DNA from: Auanema rhodensis
Taxonomy: Eukaryota; Animalia; Nematoda
Assembly: GCA_964057225.1 (NCBI GenBank)
Contig: OZ059900.1
Span: forward strand, 7,068,001-7,132,000
Direction: 5' to 3'
DNA length: 64,000 nt
The position numbers were made by a program, and so were the translations under genes. The notes under the pieces are model-generated. The model did not search any database and was not told where the DNA came from. It was given only the letters and a program-made list of their open reading frames with translations. This document shows, piece by piece, positions 3,001 to 55,885 of the stretch (its first letter is position 1; the number at the start of each line of letters is the position of its first letter).

Positions 3001-4348
3001 ATGAAGTTAACGAAGAAGATTTTATTGCGAGGACTTTTAAGCGGAAATCTGTTGAATTTGCTTTTAGTTGAGTAATATATCTTGAAATCCAAAAGCTAAG
3101 AGATATTATTTAAAATGTTCTGATTCAAACACACTAAGATGCAGTGGATAGCCATTTGGTAAGGACAGTGTACGCGATCTAGGGAAATTGTTACACAAAC
3201 GGTTTGGCAGAGACAGAAGCAGAAACAATATAGTAATAAATAAATATAGCTTTCAGAGTCAATAATTTGTTGTTCTAATTTTTAAATTAAATATGATTTA
3301 AGAATACAAATCAAAATTCATATTTTAAAACCTATGAGATTTGAACAAAATTCAAAAGATGACTTAATGTTAAAAATGAAAAAATAATCTCTAAATGTTG
3401 TCAATATTTAATATTAAATAACATAACTAAAATATTATTTTTCGAATAAAATTTTCATAATAAATGAGATACTCATTAAAATATTCGATAAGGTTAAATG
3501 AATCAAAGACGCAATGAACTAAAAGTTCTTGAAAAGCACGCCACCTGACCGCGCGTCAGTTGTTCTGTACAATATGTAGAACCAAATGACTATGAAACAG
3601 ATGATGCAAAATAAAATATCAATACTCAGCGCATACCCTTTATCAACATACCATTAAAAAACATTTTTTGAGTTTTGGGTTGTTCTAAAACTCAAGATTG
3701 ATGAGGCAGTATTGTGAAATAATCATAATAACTTTTCCATACATAAACAATTACTTTTTGAAAAAATTAAAGTTTAATAAATTAAGAATTTATTACGGTA
3801 CTGTTTTCTTCATGTTTTCCGGGAGTTTTTTTCGTTTTCAGAAAACAAATTTTTTCTGTTATAATTGCATCATGTGCTCCAATCATAAAGCTTTGCTCCA
3901 ATGCAAATCCCATTTTAATGATTCAAACAGAAAAGAGAATTTAATGAAAAGTTTTTTTTGAAAATATTCCATTTTGTTCAAAATTTTACAGAATATGTTT
4001 TTGAATTCCAAAGTATACACATCGACTTTATTATTCGAGTAACAGATATTCTGTGAATTTTGACTATTTTATTATTTGCACTTAAATTTTGTTTACAAAT
4101 ATATACTTCTGTTATTCTGAAATTATTTCAAGAAGTTAGCGAAGTTTTAAGCATATACACAGAACAATAAACATTCTTTCTGTTTGAATTAAAGCTTCGT
4201 AAAGGTTTTAGGTAGTGCCTATGTTTACTTTTTTTCAGTATGTATGTACTCATAAAGCAGATTTTTAGCTGTAATTTCAAATATAAGAATATATTTGCAG
4301 TTTTATCGGCGTTTTCTTTTATATAGTAGGCTAATCAATTAATTTAAA

Positions 4349-7300
4349 ATGTTGGTACCTGTCTGTTGTGAGCGTTTACCTGTTCGACTGGAAGTCAAAG
4401 TAATTTCAGCGAAAGGATTACCTATAATGAATAAGGTATAGAATGAAAAAAAACAATAATCAATGTGATTTTCAGTCTGTTAATTCAACAGATGGTTATG
4501 TAGATATCCGATATGGAGATTTTGAAGAAAAAACTGAGGTATTTTATCAGAATGGATGAGTTTTAACCTTTCTTCCATTCTTCAAGGTTGTGACAAGTTT
4601 AAATCCTGAGTGGAATGATACACAACATGTTCTTGATACTGATGAGAAAGAACTTACAGAACAACTTCTGCAATTCAGGTTGGTGTTTAAATCTTCTAAT
4701 CTAATTAATCTATTAAAATTTATGTTTCAGAATAATGGATTATGATACTTACACGGCTAATGATGCGATTGGTCGTGTAGACGTTGATTGCAGTATATTT
4801 GTAGAAAAAATGAGAATGAATAGCGAGGAAGCGTTTGAAGACACATGCACGATGCCTATTTACGACTCAATGAATGGTTTTAATTTGTTATTAATCGGGT
4901 ATAAACCTTTTTTTTCATTTAGGATTCTGTGGTGAACTGGTTTTTCAACTGAATATTCATCTTTTAATCAATTTTGATCATAGAAATTATGTTCAAATTT
5001 TCTCAGGTAAATTAAAACGTAATTTTCTGATTTCACTATTTTTCTGTATTTTTAGAATTTCAAGTTCCACCTGGTCATAAAGTTGTAGAGATTGGCGGAT
5101 TAGTCAATGATTTGCGTTGCGTTGTTGATCCAGATCATGAGTGGATTGATAGGTAATCTGTGTATAATAACACTGTTTGAAGAAGTTATTCCAATTCCCT
5201 AACTTTAGAATAAGATCAAATCGAGCAACAAATTCTGCTAGATTAACAGTTATTAGGGAAAGCTTACGATTGGCTGCTGTTGCTCTAGCTTCAAAAGTTG
5301 GGAAAATGGATTTCAATGCTATTGTTGGGTAAAAACTGTTAAATTTGTAAAAGCTGAGTTATGAGGTATTTTTTAGGTATAACGAATGCATTGATATTGA
5401 AGAACCAAGTTCCCATTTCATTACTGTTCGTGTTATTGGGACAGCTATACGAACTGCTCCTATAATGGAAAACATTCTACCATTTCTAGAAATGTCACCA
5501 TTTCCTATTTTCACTATAAGCGCTATTCCTATACTCAGGTTAACTTTGATTTCTTGCATTTTGTTAATAAATCAGGATTTGTAGTCAGTTGGGTATTGGA
5601 GCTGTAGTATCTGCAAAAGCTGTTCATATTCTAGACGATGATGATGAAGAACCGGAAGCTGTACGGAGAAGGTATGTGAATGATTTGTATGAATGCTGAA
5701 GGTAGTTTAGTTGGTGGAACGAGCTGCGCGTTGAATTGAACCAGCAGTCATTAAGCTTGGGATGTAATATTGTTATTGGGTATTCCGAACAATTATATGT
5801 GAATAATGGTCGTTAATCTCAAGCCTTATACTGATTTTGAAGTTTATTAATTTAGGGTTAGCATTTTTGAGTTGTTTCGGCACAGCTGTATTAGTTGACT
5901 TTGAAATGACTTCGCGTTTTCATTATGGACTATATCAAGTACGTTCAGGATCGACAGCTATAAGCGAAAAATCAAGTCTGTTCATCATTCATTTTTTTAT
6001 CATTATTCTCATTATAGTTGGAAAACTAATCACGAAACAGTTAAATAGTGAAATTCATTGTAGTACATTCCACACAACATTAGCCGACGGTGATAATACA
6101 GTAAAATCACCTCATTTAGCTAAATGTACAAAGTGCAAGTAAATAGTTACTTGATTATTAGTTGTTTCACTATTATTTCAGCGAATCTGTTTCGAATTTT
6201 ATTTTTTCTACAACAGAATGTCCTCCATCATGTTATATTCAAGGCAATAATAGTTTTATACAGGTGATTTCTTGCATATTTATTTTATAATAGTGAGTGA
6301 ATAGGTTTGTGTAGCTAAAAAGCTGAATGATTGCGATGATCGAGATGATACTGGACAAGAATTAAGCACTGTTTGTTTTTCAAAAATATTTTGTGTATGC
6401 ATTCAATCTTTAGGCTTTGCCTTTTTTGGATCATGAACTTTTTAGTCGTCTTATGGCTGAATCAAAAGTTATTAATCCTTCAGCTAACGCTATTTTTGAT
6501 ATACGTTTCACATATGCAATCAACGAGGAGTTAATTATTTGTGTAGCTACTGGTATTCTTGTTCGTCTTGTAATAATACCGGTATAATTTTCAATAGTTC
6601 ACCTTTAAACTTATATTTTTTGAAAGAATCCAATTCCAACGACTGCTCAGTCCCCACTTGGTTTAAGCGCTTTTCAAAAATATAACGATGCCCGCAGATT
6701 TTCTTGGAGTAGCGTACGAGACGCTATTCGTTTTCGAGGTCAAGTAACAACACCCGGTGTTTCTATACGCACAATCAATCTGTAAATTTAGATTAGAAAT
6801 TAGAAATATCTTGGTTTATAAACATTTGCAGCAATTCACTAAACAAGATTGATGATGTTGATAAAATTAAAAAAAATGCGTGGTCAGATATTTTAAGAAG
6901 GAGGCAAATGGAGAAAGAGAGATTAGGTCAGATGTTATTCGAGCGTCAACTTGGAGCTTATATTGGATACATAGATGTAAGATTAGCACAAAATGGAAAC
7001 ACGGTAGAGGTTTAATGCTATGCATATCAAATTAAGTATTTTCAGGTCGCTGGTATTCATATAGCACCCACAGTGTTTACGTTTTTAAAGCCAAAAGATG
7101 ATGCAGGTCCACGTCAGTATCTTGGACGATGGAGTGATCTCATCATTCGGTATATAGTGGTTTTGTATTATATATTGAATATTTTGCTTCATTTGTAGAG
7201 AAGACGATGTTAAAGATGTGAATGAAGCAGAATACTTTATTGCCAATACATTAGAAGGGCAGCTGAATAATATTCGACGTATATCAGCATCATATTCTGC

Positions 7301-41408: not shown

Positions 41409-44400
41409 ATGAATTTTCTTTTATTATACGCATTAGGTATATATTTATATCAGTTGAGAGTTTATGGAGATGATCGGGTATCTCTCTATATTGGTGGGAC
41501 ATTTCCGATGGAAGCTGGATCTGGAGGATGGGCTGGCGGTGTAGTAAGTTATTTTGATATTGCTCCCACTGTGAAATCCCATTCTTAATGTAATGATGAG
41601 ATAAAAAATGCATTATATTGCATTCAGTCACCTGTCTGAATTCGTTTTACTGCCTCGATAACTAGCGAATGTGAGAATTTCAAATTTTTACTTTTGTCAC
41701 TCAAATTTTAAGCAGATTGAATCTGTAGAATAAAGAAATCATACAACATTCAAAAGTTCAAGATAGACTGAGAATGATCAATAAAAGCAATAAAGAACTT
41801 CAACTCGAACTAACTCATTAATATTTTTATGAAGATTTTATGGTATTCAACTACATATACACATTTTTTATTTTAGCTTCTAATCGAATTAAAAACAAAT
41901 TTCCAGGCGTGCAAGCCAGCTGTAATGATGGCATTAGAAGACGTGAACACTCGAAGTGATATTTTGCCTGGATATTATTTGGCATTAAACAGCACAGATT
42001 CGAAGGTATGTGTCATATACTTGATATTTTTTGACGTTTAGAGAGATACTCTGCATTAAATATTCAAATCTGCCATGAAATATTTTTGGGAAATGAATTC
42101 GTAATCGACGTCTAAGATTTATATGTCTGTAAAACGCAAAATAGTGATTGATGTGTATAAGACAATCATGCCGAAATGCCTTATCTCGTAAATCTGTTCT
42201 AAAAATACTTGTCTCTAATCACTATACATTAAAACATTTCAATATCTAGAAGTTTACAATTTTTCATCAAAGGTTATATACTTCAAACAATTGAAGTTGG
42301 AATTTTTCATATTTCAAACATGAAAATTAAGTAGTTTATTAATCTCAATAGTAAAACTTGCTCTTCTAAGTAGAAAATATTCACATACTTTATCCTTCAT
42401 AGGTCGAATTAATCCTTTGAAACACCAGATTGTTCTTAAGAGCAACTAAATTTGATTTAAGCTGATTGATTGCGTTTTCACGAATGAAAAAAGAAAATAA
42501 TTTATTGTTTTACTTCTGAAGACTGTGGATTAAAATTTTTCGAGAATTGATAATTAGTTCAATGTTCAAAAAACAGAACAAAAAATGTTTGAAAGAATGA
42601 GTTGAAGAAATATGTAGTGCTATTCATAATAAAAGCAAAAAATTACAGTGTCAACCAGGATTAGCAACTCAACAGCTGTATGACTTGCTTTATACTCCAC
42701 CTGCAAAACTCATGCTTCTAGTTGGATGTAGTCCAGTGACAACTGTCATTGCTGAAGCTGCACCAGTTTGGAATTTAGTTGTTGTATGCGATTTTCTTAC
42801 TTTACGCTGAAATATACATTGTGATTTTCAGTTGGCATACGGAGCTAGCTCACCAGCTTTATCTAATAGGGAGAGATTTCCTTCACTGTTTCGTACCCAT
42901 CCATCAGCAAATATACAAAATCCAGCAAGGTTTCTTAGAAAAAATAATTCAAGTTTTAAATTTTTTTTTGTACTTTATAGAGTCAGTTTGTTTAAAAAAT
43001 TTGGATGGAAAAAAATAACCATTCTTCAATCAGTAGAAGAAGTATTTTCTTCAACAGCCAAAGATCTTGAAGTAAGTTTTATCGGTACTCTTTCTCGAAA
43101 AAATCATTTTGATGAATTAAAAATTTTATTTCGTAATTTTTTATACGTTTTTCTCAATTATCAGGAAGAATGTAAACGCTCGGGTATCAAAGCAGAACGA
43201 CTTAGTTTCTACGGTGATCCAGCTGATGCTATAAAAACTCTTGTCCGTCAAGATGCTCGAATTATTGTTGGACTTTTTTATGAAAAAGAAGCTCGTCGTG
43301 TGTTTTGTCAGGTATGCTTGTTATTTTAAGTTTGTAGAACTTTAACTTTAAATTAGGCTTACCATCATCGAGTGTTTGGACGCAGATATGTATGGATGTT
43401 AATAGGATGGTATGCTGATACATGGTATCTTCCAGTTCCTGATGAGCATCTCAACTGCACGGCAGATCAGGTACAAAATAAATAATGGATTATAAGTAAA
43501 AAAAACATTGTTCTAGATGAGAGAGGCCGCTTTGTATCATCTAACAACAGAAAGCTTAATGTTATCCACTGACGATACAGTTGCAATTTCGGGTATGACT
43601 GGGCGCGAATTTCAAAGACGCCTGAACGAAGTTCTTGATACTGATCCTGCAAACACTGGTGGATATCCTGAAGCTCCATTGGCATACGATGCCGTATGGT
43701 AATGAAAGCTTGGCTGAAATGTTTGAAACGTTTACATTTATTCGTTCAGGGCGTTAGCATTAGCTTTAAATTGTACTATAAAACATTTGCCACAAGGACA
43801 AAAATTAGAAGATTTTACTTATGAAGATGTTGCTACATATAATATTTTGTTCCAGTGCATGAAAAATACATCATTTCGGGGTGTTTCTGTAAGAAAAGTT
43901 AACATTTATCAAAATGTATACAATTGCTTTACAGGGACGTGTAATGTTTTCATTTTCTGGTGATCGTATAGCCAAAGTTATGGTTGAGCAATTGCAAAAA
44001 GGTAAACTCTCTGTCAACATTTTTTATGATTTAATATTTCATTACAGATAGCAAATACCACGTTATGGGTTTTTTCGATTCGTCTAGTCATCTTTTAGAT
44101 TGGACTGGAAAAGATCAGTGGTATTCTGATAAAGGACCACCAGCCGATTCCACGCTGATCCATGAAGCTGTTCTCACTGTATCAAATAGTGTAAGCATTT
44201 TAATTGTAAACAGCAAACTTCAATTTTGATATTTAGCTATTTTACGGAGTTTTATTCTTCTGCATCTCAGGAATAATATTTTCAGTTGTCATTATATCAA
44301 TTTTAGAGCATAATTCGGGAAGAATGTGAGTAAAGAAATTTGAAGAACAAAAAAATGTATGTATGTTTCACAGGATAATCAAACATTCCCAACCGGTATT

Positions 44401-47400
44401 TAATAATTGCACAATTGGTGGTTGTATTATTTGCTGGATAACATTATTTTTTATTGGTCTGCCTTCCGATCATATACCTGTTTCACATGGAGCTTTCACT
44501 ATAGTGTCATGTTCGATTTACATGCCATATACACATATATAATTATAATTCCTTTCAGACTCGTATATTTTTACTGATGATTGGATTCTCATTAGGTTTT
44601 GGATCAATGTTTGCCAAAGTTTTTATTGCTCATCGGATGGGTGCAGCTCAAAATCAGCAATTAGCCAATCGTCAAAAAGACGAGGTTAGTTTTTTCTTCT
44701 TACAAGTTTTGAAGTGATCATTCTTATCAATGGTAAGATAATCAGAATTAATGACGATTCGATTTTTTGATGTTATTATTAAAATTTTAAGGGTTTCATT
44801 TTTTATTTATAATGACATTTTTATTTAGTTTAAGTCGTGAACGTTTTTTTTTAGTTTGCAAAAAATAAAGACCATAAACTAACAATACAAACAATAGTTA
44901 CTAATCGCAAATTATGCTATCTGATGCACTTGATTGAGAATCGTTACGATAAACAGTTGTTATCCTGTAGCACATTGTTTCTCTATCATATTATTTTTAT
45001 ATTCTATTTATCAGTTGACGTATCGAGTATATTTAGTGTTGAATTATTTGTTTTATTTCCAAATTCTATGTTTTATTCTGCCGCTCTTTCCCTTATGGAA
45101 TGTGTATTTCTTCCATCCTGCATCATACCGAATTATGTTTATCCTCCTTGAATCATATAGGTATCTTAACCCCAGCTCTCCCTTTATTATTGTATTGTTA
45201 AGTCTCATCCCGTTTCCAGGCCAAAAAGCGAATCGTCATTCTAATTTCAGATCATATCTCGGCATAACTTTTACATTCAACTGTTTTTCATTGATCTTGA
45301 GTTGTTAACGTGATATTCCCATGATATCAAGATTAAATTTACCTGATACTTTATACCTTGGTGTACACAGTTACCTACAGGTGGATGGCACTCCCTGGGA
45401 AAGTATTCGAACCCTGATTGCATCTATGATTGGTCGTCCAGCTGCTTCACTTAGAAAAGCTTCCTTACATTCGCAGGGACAAATTCGGAACAGTGTTCTG
45501 AACCAGGTTGAGCATCGTCTATGTGTACTTATATGCGTGCAACCGTTACTAAAGTATATACAAAATCAAATGTTTCCTGATCTTTTCGGAATTTTTGACA
45601 GTTTCACTAGATGATTATTTTGCACAAAATTCGTATCATATTTTTTATTTAACTGCCAATTTAGCATCTAAAAACAGCCAAAAATAAACGAAATGTGTGT
45701 ATCTGCGTGTATACAGGTGCGTGTGCTTGCATACCTCTGCGTGTGTGCTGTGTGAGTATCAAAATAAAGTACACTATTTATTTTATAGCTATGAGCTGTG
45801 AGTTAAAAGAGAATCAAGTGGAAAAAAGTATATAGTTGAATTTAGTAATTTACATTTTGGTCAAATAAAAAAAATGCCATGATAGGGAAAAAACAAAGTT
45901 TAGAATGAGTTGCTATGTGATAGAGAGTATGTATGATAAGAAGCTTGGTTTAACATTTTCATTTTCGCCTTCTCTTCTATTATATAGTCCTATTCTTCTT
46001 TTGTTCACTGAAGTTATTCAGTTGATCTTGCATGGAGCATGAAGCATATGTTTATTCTTATATCTGTTAACTGCCTCTATTTGCTTATTCTAAGACTATT
46101 TTTCCCTTTCACTCTAATTATACCATTTCTTTGATGCTATTGCTATACCATCTTTCTGCTACATACAGTACTTGAAATAACAACTTCTCTGCACGTTACC
46201 TATCGAAGTGTATATATCAAATATTTTTCATGCACATCTGTGTGTTGCACTTAATATCTTTCTGTTTGTGTTTGAAATATGATTTTGGTCACATGTTTGA
46301 CACTGTCTATCGTTAAAGTCATGCAACACTACTAACATGTTGTAAGACCACTGTTATTACGCCTTGTCTAACAATCTTTTATTTGCTAACTTCTAGTGTG
46401 TGTTGCTAATGAGCTATACATTCTAATTAGCATAGTATAATTTTGAACAATGCATTCAAAAATTATATTATTTTCTTCTTTTATATTTTTTTTTCATATC
46501 TTACTTTGAATATTTTCAGCCAATCCCATCAAACAAATTTTATGCTGTTATAACAGCTTTCTTGATCTGTGATGCCATTATAAGTGTTATATGGGTCACA
46601 TTTGATCCACTAGTGGTGGATGAACAAAAATTTCCTCTACAGGTATTTTAATTTCGATCAATCTTTCTAAATATAAATGTAGGATCCGCCTGAGGGTTCA
46701 GATGATGATATCATGCTGTTGCCCAAACTGGAGCTGTGCAAAAGTGAAAATCAAGACGTTTGGACAGGTAGTTCATCTAAAACAGAAACTCATACAAAAG
46801 TAACCATTTTCAGCTCTTATATTGGGATATAAATGTCTTCTTCTCATTTTTGGTACTTTTTTATCATATGAGTGCCGAAATTTAAAATTGCGTCATATGA
46901 ATGATATTCGTTTGATTGGCTTATCCATATATAATGTAGCTATTCTTTCAATGATCACGGGACCTATTTCTGTATATTTGATTCGCAATCAACCAAATGC
47001 GTCTTTTGCTTTTATTTCTGTTACTGGTGATTCAAAATAATTTGGCATATGATGTTTTAACTTAAAATTTTCAGTCTTACTCTGTACATATATATCCTTG
47101 GGTCTCATATTTATTCCGAAAATTCGTCATATCTATACAGTACCTCCTTCTGAAGAAGAAGTTCGTTTAGTTCTGCTCAATCAAAATATTGTTATCATCA
47201 ATTTCAGATCCAAAACGGGGGTAATGGCGTAATGAAAGGTCTGACAAAGCCTGAACAACGTCGGTTCGAACAATTAGTTGCCGAAAATGAACATCTACAG
47301 AAGCAGATAGATGAGGTTTAGTTTTTTTTATTTTGAAGAAAATAAATAAATTTTATTAAGAAAGAAAAAAGAATACAGCAGTGTAGACAACGGTTGGATA

Positions 47401-47684
47401 CATTGAGAAGACGAAACTCAGTGCAGACTAGGCTAAATAATAATATAATAGAGAATGGTATAAACTCTCTAATAAGTATCAAAAAAATACATGTTCTTGT
47501 AGATGAAAGCGCTTCTAATGGAGCAAATACAACCACAACAACAGCATATATAGAAATGGATACATTTAATAAGAACAAAGGTATTGTATTCTATAAAAAC
47601 TTTAAAAAAATTGAAATTACAGGACGGTATGTAACAATACAAAATGATCTGTCATCTTGTTCATCTGATGAAATCCTTTTATGA
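41409..47684 (+). CDS. gbb-1: Metabotropic GABA-B receptor subunit 1 (class C GPCR)
   Basis: Signal peptide, then [20 protein letters not shown]|[115 protein letters not shown]...[16 protein letters not shown], a C-terminal coiled coil, and a SDEILL* end. There is one apparent 2-nt frame defect near 44505 (see findings). Confidence 0.95.
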
Positions 47685-47965
47685 TTTTTATGTTTAATTT
47701 TAATAACTTTTGATAGATATTAATAAAATTATATTGTTCTCTTCGTTTTGCTAAAATAACATTTCAAGTGGGAATTTGTAATATATTCTAATAAATTGAC
47801 TTTTTCACAGAAGGAAGTGATGAGTATGAATAAGTGTGAATTATTTGATAATAGTTTTCACAAAGAAATTCCGATCTTACTTACTGTAACTCAACTGAAT
47901 AATAATAACTATATAACTATATCATCTCAACATTCATATCTTCTTTCAAAATTGCATTGTCAATG

Positions 47966-48260
47966 CTAGCAAGCATAATGAACCACTTCAATCATACGAT
48001 CAATTTCTTTTTTATCTATCACTCTTAGAGCAGCCTTGCAAATCTCTTCAAATTCTCTCCTAAAAACGGTTTGTATCGAGAGCAGGCGCTGGTTCAAATA
48101 TACAATGGCGGTAGCTACATTATGATCGAATAAGTATTCGCTATCAAGACATTTCATTTTTGAGCACTCTCCCTTCAAATCGTAGTACACCTCAATAATA
48201 AATTGAAAGTTCATGTTCCGTAAGTTTGCTTTGCTTACGGGGTTTCAGAGAAACTCATCT
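47966..48260 (-). pseudogene. Decayed paralogue fragment of orphan gene A (82-aa ORF with an upstream in-frame TGA), lying in the 340-bp bulge of the left palindrome arm
   Basis: By-eye collinear similarity to gene A: MN..ECSKMKCLD / MN..ECLKARSSD; NVATAI / NVISSAI; RREF / DRIF; DRMIEVVHYA / DRVLEMIHHV, with near-equal spacing. Confidence 0.6.
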
Positions 48261-48539
48261 TTATTGAATTTTTTTATTTAAAAAATCAAAAAAAGTTTAA
48301 GACAATCATGGTCTGAGAAACAAAGAGATCTAATTAATGACTTGAAATGTAGAAAATAGCAAAAATCGGAAGACAGAAAAAGAAATGTATTTGCGTTATT
48401 GATTGGATATTGGTATATTGGTATATTTGTATTTTAGATTGAGTGTATATAACATCTTAGTCTAAATGATATGTTCTAGGTACAACGCATACATTCAGTG
48501 GATCGGATCCTCTACAGGTTAGTTTCAAAAATAAAAAAA

Positions 48540-48593
48540 TCTCTCTCTCTCTCTATACATCTCTCTCTCTCTCTCTCTATACATCTCTCTCTC
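48540..48593. repeat. (TC)n microsatellite in the left arm, mirrored as (GA)n at ~50884-50937
   Basis: Read directly; the TATACA interruptions are identical in both arms. Confidence 0.9.
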
Positions 48594-48768
48594 ACTTGAT
48601 TACTTTCTCACCTACTCTCTCATCAGTTCTTCTCTGAATATCTGTAATCAACTGTGAATGTTTCTGAAATTCTGGAGAAATTGTGAACTATTTACTGATA
48701 TTTCAATGTTTTTTTACATTTCTGTCTAAACTGTAGATCCTAAATTATTTGTTAACTCTAAGAGTATT

Positions 48769-48842
48769 GGCGTGATGACCAAGTGGTTATGCATGATGTC
48801 TTCCCCACTATCATCGAAAGTTCGATTCCTTCAATGAATTTT
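48769..48842 (+). ncRNA. tRNA-like RNA polymerase III module (box A + box B + T4), left arm
   Basis: Box A TGACCAAGTGG (48776-48786), box B GTTCGATTCC (48820-48829), an ATGAT/ATCAT stem between them, T-arm-like GAAAG-TTCGATT-CCTTC, and TTTT at 48839-48842. There is no acceptor stem, so this is not a functional tRNA. Confidence 0.55.
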
Positions 48843-49571
48843 GAAAAAATCAATACTAATTCTAAAATCTAAAAAACGTTTGGATGGATTTGGCTTGTAA
48901 AAAATGATATCTTTTGATGTTTATAGACGTACAAAACTTGTTCCACGCCGTGTTTTTGAATTATCTTTCTTTGTGTGAATAGCTAATGAATAGGTCTAGT
49001 CCAATGCAAAAGTTCATAACGATATCTCTGTTGGTACAAAAGTTATAACTTTCTAAAAATAAGACAAAAAGCAAAAACTTTGACTTTAAACGGCTTTATC
49101 TTCTTAACCAATGAGTTTTTTCAAAATGTTTAAACAGATCCGAGCTCTACTCGTAAAGATCTTTCGAATGAGTTGTTGATCTAAAGGATTAGAGCATTTT
49201 GAAATTTTAAGAAATAAAGAATTTGACCAATTTAGAATTAAAAAAATAAAATTTTTCAGTTTTCTAACATTTAAGTATTGCATTTGAATAAACTAAACAC
49301 GCTGATTTCAAATTTGCAAACAGAATTTTTCAATTCTCACGCTGAAAGGAGTTGTGAGACTTTGAAATTTTTGGCGTTAATCATTCAGAAGGCTATAACT
49401 CCGTTAAAATGGAATTTCAGAGACTCCCACTTAGTTTAATCGTCTTCTCCGTCTTTCATTCATCTTGAATGTTGTTTTCACGACTTTTCAACAAAATTTT
49501 TATGTTTTGTTAAAATTGTTCAATTCCATGTACTCCCCCCTTACCTACTTTTCGATCATAACAATCGATAT

Positions 49572-49905
49572 CATTGGAATTCTCAAAACATTTTCTAATT
49601 TCTTTGTTAACTATGTGGTACAATCTAGACTCAATAACGCTTAGATATATCATATAAGATGAAACTTTCATTGAAATTCTTAAAACATTTTCTACTTTTC
49701 TTGTTAACTATGTGGTATAATCAAGACTCAATAACGCTTAGATATATCATATAAGACACACATAGTAACAACACAAGGAAATTAGTGAATATTTTAAGAA
49801 ATCAAATGAAAGACTCATCTTATATGATATATCTAAGCGTTATTGAGTCTTGATTATACCACATAGTTAACAAAGAAATTAGAAAATGTTTTGAGAATTC
49901 CAATG
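49572..49905. repeat. ~98-bp unit repeated at the palindrome centre: two direct copies, then a partial and a full inverted copy
   Basis: Unit CATTG(G/A)AATTCT...GTTAACTATGTGGTA...GACTCAATAACGCTTAGATATATCATATAAGA at ~49572-49668 and ~49669-49756; inverted copies at ~49759-49808 (partial) and ~49809-49905. Confidence 0.9.
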
Positions 49906-50634
49906 ATATCGATTGTTATGATCGAAAAGTAGGTAAGGGGGGAGTACATGGAATTGAATAATTTTAACAAAAAATAAAAATTTTGTTGAAAAGTCGTGAA
50001 AACAACATTCAAGATGAATGAAAGACGGAGAAGACGATTAAACTAAGTGGGAGTCTCTGAAGTTCCATTTTAACGAAGTTATAGCCTTCTGAATGATTAA
50101 CGCCAAAAATTTCAAAGTCTCACAACTCCTTTCAGCGTGAGAGTTGAGAAATTCGGTTTTCAAATTTAAAATCAGCGTGTTTAGTTTATTCAAATACAAT
50201 ACTTAAATGTTAGAAAACTGAAAAATTTTATTTTTTTAATTCTAAATTGGTCAAATTCTTTATTTCTTAAAATTTCAAAATGCTCTAATCCTTTAGATCA
50301 ACAACTCATTCGAAAGATCTTTACGAGTAGAGCTCGAATCTATTAAAAAATTTTGAGAAAACTCATTGGTTAAGAAGATAAAGCCGTTCAAAGTCAAAGT
50401 TTTAGCTTTTTGTCTTATCTTTAGAAAGTTATAACTTTTGTACCAACAGAGATATCGTTATGAACTTTTGCATTGGACTAGACCTATTCATTAGCTATTC
50501 ACATGAAGAAAGAGAATTCAAAAAAACGGCGTGGAACAAGTTTTATACGTCTATAAACATCAAAAGATATCATTTTTTACAAGCCAAATCCATCCAAACG
50601 TTTTTTAGATTTTAGAATTAGTATTGATTTTTTC

Positions 50635-50708
50635 AAAATTCATTGAAGGAATCGAACTTTCGATGATAGTGGGGAAGACATCATGCATAACCACTTGGTC
50701 ATCACGCC
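50635..50708 (-). ncRNA. tRNA-like RNA polymerase III module, right-arm copy
   Basis: Exact reverse complement of 48769-48842. Confidence 0.55.
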
Positions 50709-51564
50709 AATACTCTTAGAGTTAACAAATAATTTAGGATCTACAGTTTCGACAGAAATGTAAAAAAACATTGAAATATCAGTAAATAGTTCACAATTTC
50801 TCCAGAATTTCAGAAACATTCACAGTTGATTACAGATATTCAGAGAAGAACTGATGAGAGAGTAGGTGAGAAAGTAATCAAGTGAGAGAGAGATGTATAG
50901 AGAGAGAGAGAGAGAGATGTATAGAGAGAGAGAGAGATTTTTTTATTTTTGAAACTAACCTGTAGAGGATCCGATCCACTGAATGTATGCGTTGTACCTA
51001 GAACATATCATTTAGACTAAGATGTTATATACACTCAATCTAAAATACAAATATACCAATATACCAATATCCAATCAATAACGCAAATACATTTCTTTTT
51101 CTGTCTTCCGATTTTTGCTATTTTCTACATTTCAAGTCATTAATTAGATCTCTTTGTTTCTCAGACCATGATTGTCTTAAACTTTTTTGATTTTTTAAAT
51201 GAATGTTGAGATGATATAGTTATATAGTTATTATTATTCAGTTGAGTTACAGTAAGTAAGATCGGAATTTCTTTGTGAAATCTCTATATTACTAGATTCG
51301 AACTCTTTTAATCAAAATTTTTTTTAGTGTTCTGGAGAGAGGCAGTGTCTTATTTAGCTTTCAAATAAGTAAATTTCCTTGTTTTTGAACCCCCAGTTGT
51401 TTCAGGAATACGTAGAATCAAATATATAATTCCTGAATATGCAACAAAAATTGAAAAAATAAACAAAAAATCATAACACTTAGTTCAAAGCTACTATAAT
51501 TCTAATAATTTTAAAAAATTGGCTATAACAGAAAATATTGAGTAATATTAATCGATATTCATAT

Positions 51565-52599
51565 TTAGTCTTCAATGTCGATAGTACAGATTTTGCGTTG
51601 ATTTCTTTCTTTGCCAAACATTCTCTGTTTAACAACTCTGATTTTGTCTCTTTCAATCTAAATATACCAGTAACCAATAGTAAACAAACAAGTTATTTAC
51701 AATGTCTTTTATAAAGTCCAGATCATCTTTGGAAAAGTTTATATTGTTTGCATAAATGTAGGGATTTTCTCGATGAGGAGCTTGCATAGAAATTTCAGCA
51801 AATTTGAGGTTCATCTTCAATTAAAAGGCAAACAAAGTTAAGAAAAAAATGTAACTAACAAACTCTCTAACTCTATAGAAGGTGAATGTACTAACATCTT
51901 TCCTTGAAAGCAATATCATTTTCTAAAGAATAATTTTCAATAAAGAATAAAAAATGTCTTGTACTTGAGTACGATCCGGGTTATCTCTAAGAATGCTCTA
52001 GAAAAATAATAATATTTTACAAAACAAATAGTTTCATCTTACCACATGATGTATCATTTCAAGAACCCTGTCAGTCGTTAATTTACTAGCAGGATCATCG
52101 TTATATTTCTAAAACCCCAGTCATCTGTCATTTGAAATAGCATAACATTATTCACCTTTTCATAACAGCGGCTAAAGATTCGGTCATTTTGTTTGTTAAT
52201 GGTAAAAATGTTCAAAGTTTCTTTCTTGATAGCACTTGAAATAACATTGCCGACTCTTCCTATGTCAGAGGATCTAGCTTTCAAGCACTCCGAAATTATA
52301 CTCATTGAATCTAGCATCTCCTCACACAATGAGTTCATTTTCAGCATTCGGTCGTTGATATTGAGATGACTAGGTGTTGCAAATCTCTCAGATTGGTCAC
52401 AAAAGGTCCAATGCTTGTATTCTTCAGTGTAAAAATCTTGTTCCTTCATTGTACGGAAATAGAACACACGTTCTTGTTCAACATTTCTATGTAAATTATT
52501 ATATTCATCTGACCGCTGTATAAATTCAGCTTCAAGTTCTTTCATATTTTTCACTGTGCGTGTGACTGAATCATAAGAATCATCATCGGTATTGTTCAT
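51565..52599 (-). CDS. Orphan gene A, ~270-aa predicted helical protein of unknown function, 6 exons
   Basis: MNNTDDDS...CYEK|KYNDDPASKLTTDRVLEMIHHV|SILRDNPDRTQ|KMILLSRKDVSTFTFYRVREF|MNLKFAE...FIKDI|IERDKIR...IDIED*. Five short GT-AG phase-0 introns keep the frame open; a TTCCAG acceptor lies directly before the ATG. Confidence 0.75.
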
Positions 52600-53369: not shown

Positions 53370-54049
53370 TCACAATTCAGCTTTCTTCTCATCGAAGTTC
53401 TCACAATTTCTCAGACTTAAAGATAGTATAATGTTGATCAAAGAAAAAAAAACTCACTAAGTTGATTTCATAATTCCTCTCATTCGTTGAAAATATTTTT
53501 TGGTATACTTGAACTCCAGTATCATACCATCAGGGATAGGCAAATTCGCTTTTACATGTTTCTCAACTTGATTACAAATGAATTTCATATATTCAGAAAT
53601 GAGAGAATAGAGTTTACGATACTCATTTTGAATCAAATAATTGAATCTCTCCTCCTCATTCATATGTTCCGTATGTACTTGCATTAAAAATCGAATTTGG
53701 CCAATTGTTTGTCTTAGTTTAATTGAATCACTACAAGCTAGATTGCTTGAGCGTAGATCTGATATCACGTCATCTTCCTTGGCTGTCAATTTGGCATTGC
53801 CATCATTCAGTTCCTTCGCGAATGCTGGGAAAAGATTACGGAGACAATGAAGTCGTTTCTCACGATCAATTTTGTGAGCTTTAATTCGATCTATTTCCAT
53901 CATTTGTTCATCAACTTGTTTAGTCTGTGAGTTTTCATAAACTTCTTCTTCCATTTGAAAAAAATCAAAATTCCCGTAAAAAGGTACATCCTGAACAAGT
54001 CATTAACACCTATTAAATGTACAAATATGAAACAAACCAAATCAGACAT
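53370..54049 (-). CDS. Orphan gene B, ~195-aa charged helical protein of unknown function, 3 exons
   Basis: MSDL|DVPFYGNFDFFQMEEEVYENS...RGIMKST|YLRNCENFDEKKAEL*. Two short GT-AG introns; AATAAA on the minus strand ~60 nt after the stop. Confidence 0.72.
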
Positions 54050-54911: not shown

Positions 54912-55885
54912 TCAGCATTGACTCCTGGTTTTTTTCATTTCCACCGACAATTCTAACAAATATTCTATGCATTCCGTCCTGAAATATCTTAATAAAACAA
55001 AATAAATATCTCAGAACTCTTTACATAATCTTTGTTTCTTCCCATGACGGTCCCCAGACAAATAATCCGTGATTCCTTACGAGAACTGCACAAGTTCGAG
55101 GAGATTCATCCAACATTTTTTCTATTCCGGGCTGAAATGTGTATTTGAAATCAGAATGTTCCTCTGGCTAATCAACTTTCAGCTGAGATTCGCTTGGCAT
55201 GTTATCTATTATAGGGATTGATAATGTGTCAGTGTTTGTAAGCATTTTCCCTGTGAATGGGTCCCAAATACCTAAAATAGTCTAAATGAACATACAAGAA
55301 AAAATTAAAGATTAGAAACCTTTTAAATATTCTTGATCGGAGATCTCAAAAACATTTCCATCTGTTAGTTGTGTTATAAGATTTGCAGCTATAGAATGCG
55401 TATGAATAACACATGCACAACCTGTTATAAATCATCAATATCAGCCACACATTGAATTTGAAACCTGTGCCATTCATCAGTAAAGTAAAAATTACAGCAC
55501 AAGATGAAACGGTAATTTTAGGATTTTCTGCTGACTGTACAAGAGATTTATTTGTTACATTGTAAATGAAAATGTCCTCCCTAAATATTTTTTTATAGTT
55601 CGAAATAAAACGATAAAAATACTTTTTTAATCTTTCCTTCTGTAATGCAGATGGCGAAACATATAAAAGATCATCCACTAAGCATCCCATTGCCCCTCCT
55701 GATCCTTTCATCCATCCTAACGAGTAGAACTGTTTCATTAATGAAACGAAAAGCTCTAGGTTCATTTCCTGAAATTGTCTTTTTGAATTAAAAAAAAAAT
55801 TTTTTTTTGTTAATACCTCATGCTTACTGGAATCCGCATAGCTGGAGAGTCCTTTGAAATTTGAATCATTCAACAAATCTGACAT
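54912..55885 (-). CDS. APIP: Methylthioribulose-1-phosphate dehydratase (APIP/MtnB, class II aldolase fold, methionine salvage)
   Basis: [26 protein letters not shown], zinc-binding [46 protein letters not shown]. Confidence 0.93.

Follow-up and report, generated by a model that had tools for sequence, protein, structure and literature searches.

A family of palindromes on the probable X chromosome of Auanema rhodense with signs of gene conversion between arms

A genome-wide search of the 180.9-Mb germline assembly of the nematode Auanema rhodense showed that a 3.4-kb mirror repeat lying between two convergent genes is one of 28 related palindromes that, with one single-arm copy, make up a family whose members are all located between 5.65 and 10.33 Mb on one chromosome (C8), which is probably the X chromosome, as also suggested by the gbb-1-like gene next to the repeat. 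We consider it probable (at roughly 0.6) that these are sex-chromosome palindromes kept alike by gene conversion between their arms, and not a MITE or foldback transposon. This reading is drawn from patterns in a single assembly, which repeated fresh formation of palindromes from single arms would match equally well.

In the window (the whole 64,000-nt stretch of DNA analysed here), a repeat search recovered two inverted arms of 1427 nt each (48278–49704 on the plus strand and 49773–51199 on the minus strand), 97% complementary and 68 nt apart, together with an outer inverted repeat of 85 nt (47853–47937 and 51199–51283, 99% complementary) that prolongs them; the full mirror repeat spans 47853–51283. 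An earlier note on this DNA had described a near-perfect palindrome at 47856–51280 between convergent genes, with arms of ~1.44 kb and almost no spacer. The palindrome is present, its proposed limits were correct to within 3 nt and its arms are indeed highly alike, but a 340-nt insert in the left arm (47936/8 to 48275/7), absent from the right arm, had been missed; with the outer repeat and the insert included, the left arm measures 1.85 kb and the right arm 1.51 kb. The centre had likewise been taken for a near-absent spacer and is in fact the inner end of a 97-nt unit, found by repeat search in 1.9 tandem copies on the left (49571–49756, plus strand) and 1.4 inverted copies on the right (one at 49818–49906 and a partial one at 49773–49817); the 68 nt that separate the arms under ungapped scoring occupy 49705–49772. 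The convergence of the flanking genes was also correctly described: the left neighbour is on the plus strand and the right, orphan neighbour on the minus strand. The left neighbour, named as gbb-1, carries an ANF_receptor domain (42832–43326) and, further downstream, a 7tm_3 domain in its last open reading frames (46822–47684, plus strand), i.e., it is a class-C GPCR gene consistent with gbb-1, and these frames end ~170 nt before the palindrome, just as proposed.

Differences between the two window arms are distributed very unevenly. Global alignment of the left with the right arm gave 40 substitutions, 39 of which fall in the inner ~1 kb (48727–49723), while the outer ~530 aligned nt contain only a mismatch at the very edge (47855) and one 1-nt indel. 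The 85-nt outer repeat is locus-private DNA, as the mirrored pair in the window represents its only two copies in the 181-Mb genome. The 340-nt bulge (47938–48277 in the arm alignment) sits within the identical tract and holds an intact 82-codon open reading frame (47966–48214, minus strand), for which a paralogous protein at C8:12.47 Mb (50% identity) was the sole relative detected; the genome search found no near-identical source of the bulge itself. A derivation of the bulge from the neighbouring orphan gene, as a dead copy, was rejected, since BLAST showed no similarity to any gene of the window. No perfect palindrome of 12 nt or longer was found in the central 300 nt, and neither TTAGGC nor GCCTAA occurs in 47853–51283.

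Across the family, each locus has a core of ~2.7 kb, with arms of ~1.33 kb each, and between them a centre that varies from 0 to ~1.7 kb and often consists of tandem repeats; the 97-nt unit is expanded to ~16 copies in the paralogue at 6.99 Mb. Arms at loci other than that of the window are 1.2 to at least 5.8 kb long and 82–100% identical. The copies form four subfamilies, each locally clustered, with 82–97% identity within and 58–63% between them, and neighbouring copies are the most similar ones; the nearest copies are still 3–6% apart, which gives no sign of recent bursts. Conservation peaks near the axis and is lowest at the arm ends. Unit ends are common within subfamilies and partly between subfamilies II and III, but differ in subfamilies I and IV; at the window locus, the outermost ~120 nt of the unit could not be aligned to other subfamilies. 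The loci examined in detail comprised 13 palindromic loci and the solo-arm locus, all fetched whole with their flanks, the window locus, and the loci at 6.87 and 6.99 Mb, which were pieced together.

Two gene-rich blocks hold the whole family, which has no member beyond 10.4 Mb, though the chromosome has non-satellite DNA further on, at 10.8 and 12.0 Mb. The 15 loci at 9.14–10.32 Mb follow one another at even distances (mean 84 kb, CV 0.25; none of 100,000 random placements was as even), and the evenness of the 13 loci at 5.65–7.12 Mb is not significant (P = 0.09). Segmental duplication was considered as the cause of the even spacing and rejected, as the flanks of neighbouring loci have no DNA similarity past the unit. 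Exceptions to such dissimilar flanks are one pair of loci that share ~880 nt of flank on one side, and paralogues recognisable at the protein level.

Several observations point to copying between the two arms of a locus. The partner arm was the closest relative for 27 of the 28 arms tested, at 95.5–100% identity compared to 86–97% for the best other locus, which is a signature of arm-to-arm copying and answers, at the level of the family, the point raised earlier that the persistence of such a palindrome needs explaining. The exception is the locus at 6.63 Mb, whose arms are just 82% alike. Comparison of the three nearest copies revealed 52 sites common to both arms of a single locus only, and between-arm differences are patchy, with long identical tracts in between. 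Furthermore, the inverted repeat extends past the family unit into mirrored locus-private DNA at 11 or more of the 16 loci examined (solo arm excluded), a pattern that insertion cannot produce. At 6.87 Mb, for example, the outer 176 nt exist only as two mirrored copies, and at 9.14 Mb a tract of 1156 nt beyond the unit is mirrored at 100% identity and includes an unrelated repeat of ~490 bp (>300 first-look candidates genome-wide, with matches on six other contigs). Two loci have one arm that is 27–37 nt shorter and flanks that are unique, and one locus consists of a single arm only.

These patterns would be accounted for if one arm were copied onto the other by intrachromosomal gene conversion or template-switch repair, a process that would keep the arms alike, could push the arm boundary into private flanks (in the window, as far as the 85-nt outer repeat) and could mirror insertions. 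In the window copy, the last copying event would have taken in the outer ~530 nt, with subsequent drift of the inner 1 kb to ~4% divergence, so homogenisation has not been continuous; the bulge, lying within the identical tract and having no near-identical source, requires an extra deletion or a template jump. The loci probably go back to an old module whose core was flanked on each side by two X-specific orphan genes directed inward; copies of this module may have arisen by duplication along this portion of the X and then decayed everywhere but in the core. The arms show no GC enrichment, though GC-biased conversion often yields one.

The most constant part of the family is a 27-nt motif located ~190 nt from the axis (TCCATGTACTCCCCCCTTACCTACTTT; motif search, left copy at 49525–49551 on the plus strand and right copy at 49926–49952 on the minus strand). 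All 56 copies of this motif in the 181-Mb genome lie inside family arms at C8 5.65–10.33 Mb, and the reversed control gave 0; the motif is thus strongly enriched on C8, but has no sites there outside this stretch. Each copy carries two mismatches at most, while identity between subfamilies is ~60% in the sequence around it, which suggests that selection acts on the motif. It is not self-complementary, and its string had no match in a literature search.

An open frame of 94–121 codons recurs in distant copies and was rejected as an arm gene, because its substitutions are spread evenly over codon positions and it has no Pfam match. The enlarged centre at 10.32 Mb was considered as the site of a transposase and likewise rejected, its three open reading frames belonging to no Pfam family. 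A tRNA gene or tRNA-derived SINE was rejected as well: ARAGORN found none in 47000–52000 or at 12 loci, and Rfam searches gave no tRNA match at E up to 10 or 1, with generic hairpins as the only matches (gathering and E-value thresholds). The tRNA-like content therefore reduces to box-A/B-like strings, which subfamily alignment places in two stretches of the left arm, both on the plus strand. The first has A/B-box-like motifs at 48447–48512 (mirror copy 50965–51030), and the second, at 48767–48835 (mirror copy 50642–50710), has an A-box-like TGACCAAGTGG and a B-box-like AGTTCGATTCC and is followed by a T-run in other subfamilies. Between them, repeat search and alignment identified a (TC)n/24-nt repeat that is present in all subfamilies (48540–48593, plus strand; mirror copy 50884–50937).

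Of the two options in the earlier note, a large non-autonomous foldback element and local palindromic amplification, the second is nearer the truth, with the correction that it is a multi-copy family without the marks of a transposon. A non-autonomous foldback element of the Tc6/FB/MITE kind, hopping locally on the X and served by a transposase encoded elsewhere, for which the 27-nt motif or another internal site would be the recognition sequence, seems unlikely to us, although it is the alternative to which we give the most weight. Such an element would be a multi-copy, discrete ~2.7-kb unit built of long terminal inverted repeats, with neighbouring copies the most similar and an invariant cis motif that could serve as transposase binding site, all of which is seen here. 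Within subfamilies the unit ends are also sharp and the flanks unrelated; this looks transposon-like, and the dispersal of the family is a feature for which gene conversion between arms does not account. However, no target-site duplication was found at either candidate boundary of the window palindrome (47853/51283 and 47856/51280), as already noted from the sequence, or where the unit itself ends, here (48278/51199) and at 12 other loci. No Pfam transposase was detected in any arm or centre examined, in agreement with the initial observation, and the arms of the window palindrome hold no long conserved open reading frame. The termini differ across subfamilies and are the least conserved part, most loci have mirrored private flanks, the copies are not dispersed and all lie in one 4.7-Mb stretch, and even the nearest ones have diverged by several percent. 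The family is also far from the hundreds of copies of a known MITE family that had been named as a counter-case, with its 28 palindromes and one half copy. Least probable of all is an assembly artefact, for instance from a long read that is a palindromic chimera. Palindromes can in general result when adapters are missed in PacBio libraries, but the window arms differ at 40 sites and by the 340-nt insert, and the architecture recurs at 27 further loci, where both arms carry locus-specific substitutions.

Two further explanations assign the palindromes a function. A hairpin-RNA locus, in which read-through from the flanking genes or an internal promoter would yield long dsRNA and then small RNAs, is improbable, although the 1.4-kb near-perfect stem, the genes converging on it and the inward-pointing box-A/B-like stretches in each arm fit such a locus, and the idea that a transcript could be a substrate for ADAR or Dicer is physically plausible. 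The arms of hpRNA or endo-siRNA loci are homologous to a target gene, whereas in a genome search the arms here showed no similarity to neighbouring genes or to anything outside the family and thus have no evident RNA target; an hpRNA derived from the neighbouring orphan gene families (o1 and o2) was rejected for the same reason. In addition, no Rfam family or tRNA was detected, and the T-runs after the tRNA-like box in other subfamilies would halt Pol III long before the stem was complete. Somewhat less doubtful, though still a tentative suggestion, is that the paired 27-nt motifs are putative factor-binding or candidate landing sites that mark this X-derived segment, for dosage compensation or chromatin domains or in connection with unusual meiotic segregation of the X (drive), and that the palindrome with its arm copying serves as a device to keep two intact sites per locus. 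The restriction of the near-invariant motif to the arms, its zero count in the reversed control, the even spacing of 15 loci and the non-Mendelian X transmission in the genus (PMC11075566) are in line with this suggestion. Against it, the family occupies two gene-rich blocks only and ends at 10.4 Mb, the other 13 loci are not significantly even, Auanema is reported to be without the condensin-DC duplicate (PMC12629237) and the literature search did not find the motif. If it were true, function would explain why the spacing is an even ~84 kb, and the X-only orphan genes would belong to this system as well.

We return to the preferred reading, sex-chromosome palindromes maintained by gene conversion, and compare the family with known systems. 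Gene-converting palindromes occur on sex chromosomes in birds and willow as well as in mammals. In mammals, those of the human, chimpanzee and macaque X and Y and of the mouse X are maintained by arm-to-arm gene conversion (PMC8327919, PMC8981503, bioRxiv 10.1101/800185). The Auanema family resembles these in its (probable) sex-chromosome location, in partner arms that are far closer to each other than to paralogous palindromes, in structural change concentrated at the centre or spacer, and in linked lineage-specific multi-copy gene families, here found as mirror pairs inside the arms at several loci. Unlike the mammalian palindromes, they are 10 to 100 times smaller (~2.7–10 kb), have a non-coding conserved core, are all paralogues of one unit with an invariant 27-nt motif, sometimes have almost no spacer and are not GC-enriched; they also fall short of arms longer than 8–10 kb with >99% identity, those in the window having 1.5–1.85 kb and 97%. 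The inverted repeats of plastid genomes, whose boundaries shift by 'ebb and flow', offer another parallel, with homogenised arms, ends that move into single-copy DNA and an outermost part that is the youngest and most identical, but the present family is nuclear and multi-locus and has no large single-copy region between its arms. Foldback transposons (Drosophila FB; C. elegans Tc6 and PAL-type repeats) are built almost entirely from two inverted arms of great length and have tandem repeats toward the middle. The family has both these features, lacks coding capacity and is present in multiple copies as they are, and is unlike them in its absence of target-site duplications, unconserved ends, mirrored flanks, single region and lack of any autonomous partner found.

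Two systems of short motifs in nematodes were also compared. The Sequence For Elimination (SFE) of Auanema and Oscheius is a 29-nt palindromic break-site motif (bioRxiv 10.64898/2026.08.27.747507), which shares with the 27-nt motif the genome, the short conserved sequence and, by coincidence, a number of 28 sites. The SFE is itself palindromic, marks gene/satellite borders on all chromosomes and is associated with telomere addition, in contrast to the 27-nt motif, which forms distant inverted pairs in gene-rich DNA with no telomere-like hexamers and, in the window, gene-bearing flanks on both sides. The rex sites of C. elegans and C. briggsae with their MEX and MEX II motifs (PMC10076027, PMC9477397) are similar in having motifs of 12–30 nt that are X-restricted and clustered at discrete spaced sites; we claim no sequence match to them, and the motif here covers only a part of the chromosome in a genus for which the condensin-DC paralogue is reported as absent (PMC12629237). 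In the publication of the assembly, the 29-nt break motif is the only context in which palindromes are mentioned, and a limited literature search found no description of nematode sex-chromosome palindromes with gene conversion.

The family displays all stages of a palindrome's life: arms that are perfect, arms that are drifting, one that has decayed and one that stands alone, as well as growth of the boundary into private DNA, a foreign repeat that was mirrored and centres that have expanded. This range opens the birth, maintenance and loss of palindromes to direct tests, at loci small enough for whole-locus PCR and CRISPR in a culturable worm. The arm-only motif, together with the regular spacing seen in half of the loci, also raises the possibility of a cis-acting mark for part of the X, which matters because this genus transmits its X non-Mendelianly.

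To the right of the window palindrome, the first long open reading frame of orphan family o1 (52078–52599) and that of family o2 (53457–53954) are both on the minus strand and oriented toward the palindrome, and the two families were found only at C8 6.18–10.43 Mb. Members lie within ~7 kb of 15 of the 29 loci, and, among the matches listed, each copy no more than ~15 kb from a palindrome is oriented toward it. Mirror pairs of o1/o2 genes are located inside the arms at 6.99, 9.43 and 10.32 Mb; the window arms contain no gene of either family. A database search for sister-species relatives of the o2 protein returned nothing, and the ESM Atlas gave no usable match. For the class II aldolase neighbour (55346–55858), the only proteins matched were from Caenorhabditis, at 48–50% identity.

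The inverted repeat described in the earlier note is real. Repeat search recovered two inner arms of 1427 nt (48278-49704 and 49773-51199) that are 97% complementary, together with an outer inverted-repeat pair of 85 nt (47853-47937 and 51199-51283; 99%), and a 340-nt insert in the left arm (~47938-48277, hereafter the bulge) is missing from the right arm. The suggestion that there is almost no spacer holds insofar as 68 nt lie between the arms, but the palindrome centre is formed by the inner end of a 97-nt repeat unit, with 1.9 copies on the left and 1.4 inverted copies on the right. At the 6.99-Mb paralogue (Mb values are positions on C8, the contig carrying the window and probably the X), this unit forms ~16 tandem copies in a single orientation (C8:6,989,716-6,991,254). 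The neighbours are also as proposed, with a plus-strand class-C GPCR gene on the left, whose ANF_receptor and 7tm_3 domains are consistent with gbb-1, and a minus-strand orphan gene on the right. Global alignment of the two halves revealed 40 substitutions (21 transitions and 19 transversions), all of them within 48727-49723 bar one at the very margin; within the outer ~530 aligned nt there is a single 1-nt indel and no substitution besides the marginal one. As a uniform rate would predict about 14 differences in this stretch, the outer part was likely copied between the arms much later than the inner part.

Searching the 180,911,798-base assembly with one arm, the route to copy number that the note had proposed, returned paired matches in opposite orientation at many loci and exclusively on C8; counted through the 27-nt motif described below, the family comprises 28 palindromes and one solo arm. 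Identity is 93-97% at 6.87, 6.99, and 7.118 Mb (the three nearest loci, the last being that of the window) and 58-73% at the remaining loci. Half-units of 14 loci fell into four subfamilies (58-63% identity between and 82-97% within), which occupy 5.65-6.63 Mb (subfamily III), 6.87-7.12 Mb (IV), 9.14-9.74 Mb (II), and 9.83-10.32 Mb plus a single copy at 5.69 Mb (I); detailed examination covered 17 of the 29 loci. Across 9.14-10.32 Mb, the 15 loci follow one another at even intervals (49-118 kb, mean 84 kb, CV 0.25), with none of 100,000 random placements equally even, and the evenness of the 13 loci at 5.65-7.12 Mb was not significant (CV 0.67, P = 0.09). In the 2-Mb gap between the palindrome blocks, a 348-bp satellite was found at every point sampled from 7.4 to 8.6 Mb, and also at 4.0 Mb; other spot samples on C8 contained tandem repeats of 527-532 bp (4.8-5.2 Mb), a 371-bp repeat (10.5 Mb), or non-satellite DNA (5.5, 9.0, 10.8, and 12.0 Mb). 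Separately, two family loci 447 kb apart have ~880 nt of flank in common, on one side only and in opposite orientation (nt 350-1191 of the region C8:6,631,200-6,636,199 and nt 3837-4716 of the other region), which points to flanking DNA having travelled along in one or more dispersal steps.

The best-supported reading is that of a palindrome family, on what is probably a sex chromosome, in which copying from arm to arm keeps the arms homogeneous. When both arms of 14 loci were compared over 1 kb outward from the motif (a 27-nt block in each arm, described below), the partner arm was the closest relative of 27 of the 28 arms (95.5-100%), with the best other locus at 86-97%. Derived states shared by the two arms of a single locus were counted at 33, 14, and 5 sites across the three nearest loci, and arm-to-arm differences are patchy, with long identical tracts between them. 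The arms of the 6.63-Mb palindrome (C8:6,631,200-6,636,199) are 82% alike, and by sequence it looks like a member that escaped from homogenisation; its left arm is 92% identical to another locus, and its right arm is ~82% from everything. The 9.916-Mb locus is the solo arm, with one arm and the centre and without a partner (nt 3507-5110 of C8:9,911,700-9,921,699). A 10-kb palindrome at C8:10,319,500-10,329,499 has arms of 4.8 kb (99.3%), each holding a motif pair 2.4 kb apart; the DNA between the two motifs includes ~1 kb with ORFs that match no Pfam family.

How the arms end bears directly on the alternatives. Within a subfamily the family unit has sharp ends, and the inverted repeat continues past the unit in at least 11 of the 16 loci examined (the solo arm aside). 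The two mirrored copies of the window's outer 85 nt are the only copies in the genome; at 6.87 Mb an extra 176 nt private to the locus are 100% mirrored, as are at least 1156 nt beyond the unit at 9.14 Mb, and arms reach about 5 kb or longer at 6.99, 9.43, and 10.32 Mb. At two loci with unique flanks, one arm falls 27-37 nt short of the unit. The mirrored flank at 9.14 Mb includes a ~490-bp dispersed repeat (C8:9,139,300-9,139,781) with 322 first-look candidates in a genome search, whose scored matches are 82-92% identical and lie on six other contigs (C1 and C3-C7), and the adjoining 680 nt match a tandem array with a 1,944-bp period at C5:7.677-7.689 Mb. The 9.14-Mb arms carry exact mirror copies of both, and since independent insertion cannot give such identity, the repeat was copied across.

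Transposon insertion cannot make mirrored flanks, and this weighs against the foldback element offered as one option in the earlier note. That reading fails on four defining features, namely a target-site duplication, termini conserved across the family, flanks of ordinary DNA, and either dispersed copies or an autonomous partner; in agreement with the note on the first, no flanking direct repeat was found at any candidate boundary of the window palindrome. Arm-to-arm copying with tracts overrunning the boundary would mirror the flanks, as would, alternatively, template-switch repair that ends at varying points. The note's further proposal, that read-through transcripts would fold into dsRNA, is possible, but no target is visible. 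Under homogenisation by arm-to-arm copying, arm boundaries would ebb and flow. The closest known systems are the palindromes of mammalian X and Y chromosomes (PMC8327919, PMC8981503), from which the Auanema family differs in being small, in its non-coding core, in the common descent of all its members, and in its invariant motif.

This motif, TCCATGTACTCCCCCCTTACCTACTTT (49525-49551, ~190 nt from the palindrome axis), is the outstanding block of the family alignment, in which 23% of columns are near-invariant and the second-longest run of such columns measures 11 nt. With up to 3 mismatches allowed, a search of the whole genome found 28 forward and 28 reverse copies, each with at most 2 mismatches and all within C8 5.65-10.33 Mb, and a reversed control pattern had 0 matches. 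Pairing is convergent everywhere but at two loci, namely the solo arm and one where a copy carries a 4-nt deletion. Because the motif is invariant, the simplest inference is a putative sequence-specific binding site, and a candidate role in marking the chromosome deserves attention given the even spacing and the confinement to part of the X. A role like that of classical rex sites is disfavoured, as a condensin-DC duplicate is reported missing from Auanema (PMC12629237) and the family covers part of the chromosome rather than the whole. In A. rhodense APS4, ~61% of the genome present in the germline is discarded in somatic cells, at 28 break sites that each carry a 29-nt palindromic motif, and the text of the assembly paper mentions palindromes solely for this break motif (bioRxiv 10.64898/2026.08.27.747507). 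The 27-nt motif is not this published break motif (SFE), as it is not self-complementary and the palindrome region contains no telomere-like hexamers; its string was not found in the literature searched.

Two orphan gene families accompany the palindromes, represented to the right of the window palindrome by minus-strand ORFs at 52078-52599 (o1) and 53457-53954 (o2), for which no Pfam family, database homologue, or Atlas relative was found. With single ORFs rather than joined spliced models as protein queries throughout, all genomic matches (16 for o1 and 31 for o2) were on C8 at 6.18-10.43 Mb, and a member lies within ~7 kb at 15 of the 29 loci. Among the copies listed, all of the more than 30 within ~15 kb of a palindrome face toward it (plus strand on the left, minus on the right); even at the solo arm, three genes on the left (+) and three on the right (-) converge. 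Mirror pairs of o1/o2 occur inside long arms at several loci (6.99, 9.43, and 10.32 Mb). The family probably descends from an ancient module in which orphan genes faced a core from both sides. Paralogues at different loci share 25-48% protein identity against 82-93% DNA identity for non-coding cores within one subfamily, which indicates that the core is constrained or exchanged between loci; no similarity was found between the arms and o1/o2. At 9.326-9.335 Mb, four orphan-family copies stand in tandem, with an in-frame TAG.

The bulge holds an intact 82-codon ORF (47966-48214, minus strand) without a Pfam family, which has a protein paralogue (50% identical, 70% similar) at C8:~12.47 Mb, 5.35 Mb distant, and the bulge has no detected similarity to the neighbouring genes. 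As the genome search found no near-identical source, a fresh insertion is unlikely, and the bulge is more probably left-flank DNA of long standing; in the copy that gave rise to the outer 85 nt on the right, it would then have been either skipped or lost afterwards. The junction ambiguity is just 1-2 nt. Possibly the ORF is a genuine small gene that the palindrome has partly engulfed.

An open frame of 94-121 codons recurs across distant family copies, and was rejected as a gene because substitutions are even over the three codon positions and no Pfam family matches. Neither ARAGORN nor Rfam recognised a tRNA or other RNA family in the arms. Each arm contains two tRNA-like stretches with box-A/B-like strings and a (TC)n tract between them, and in three subfamilies a T-run follows the second stretch.
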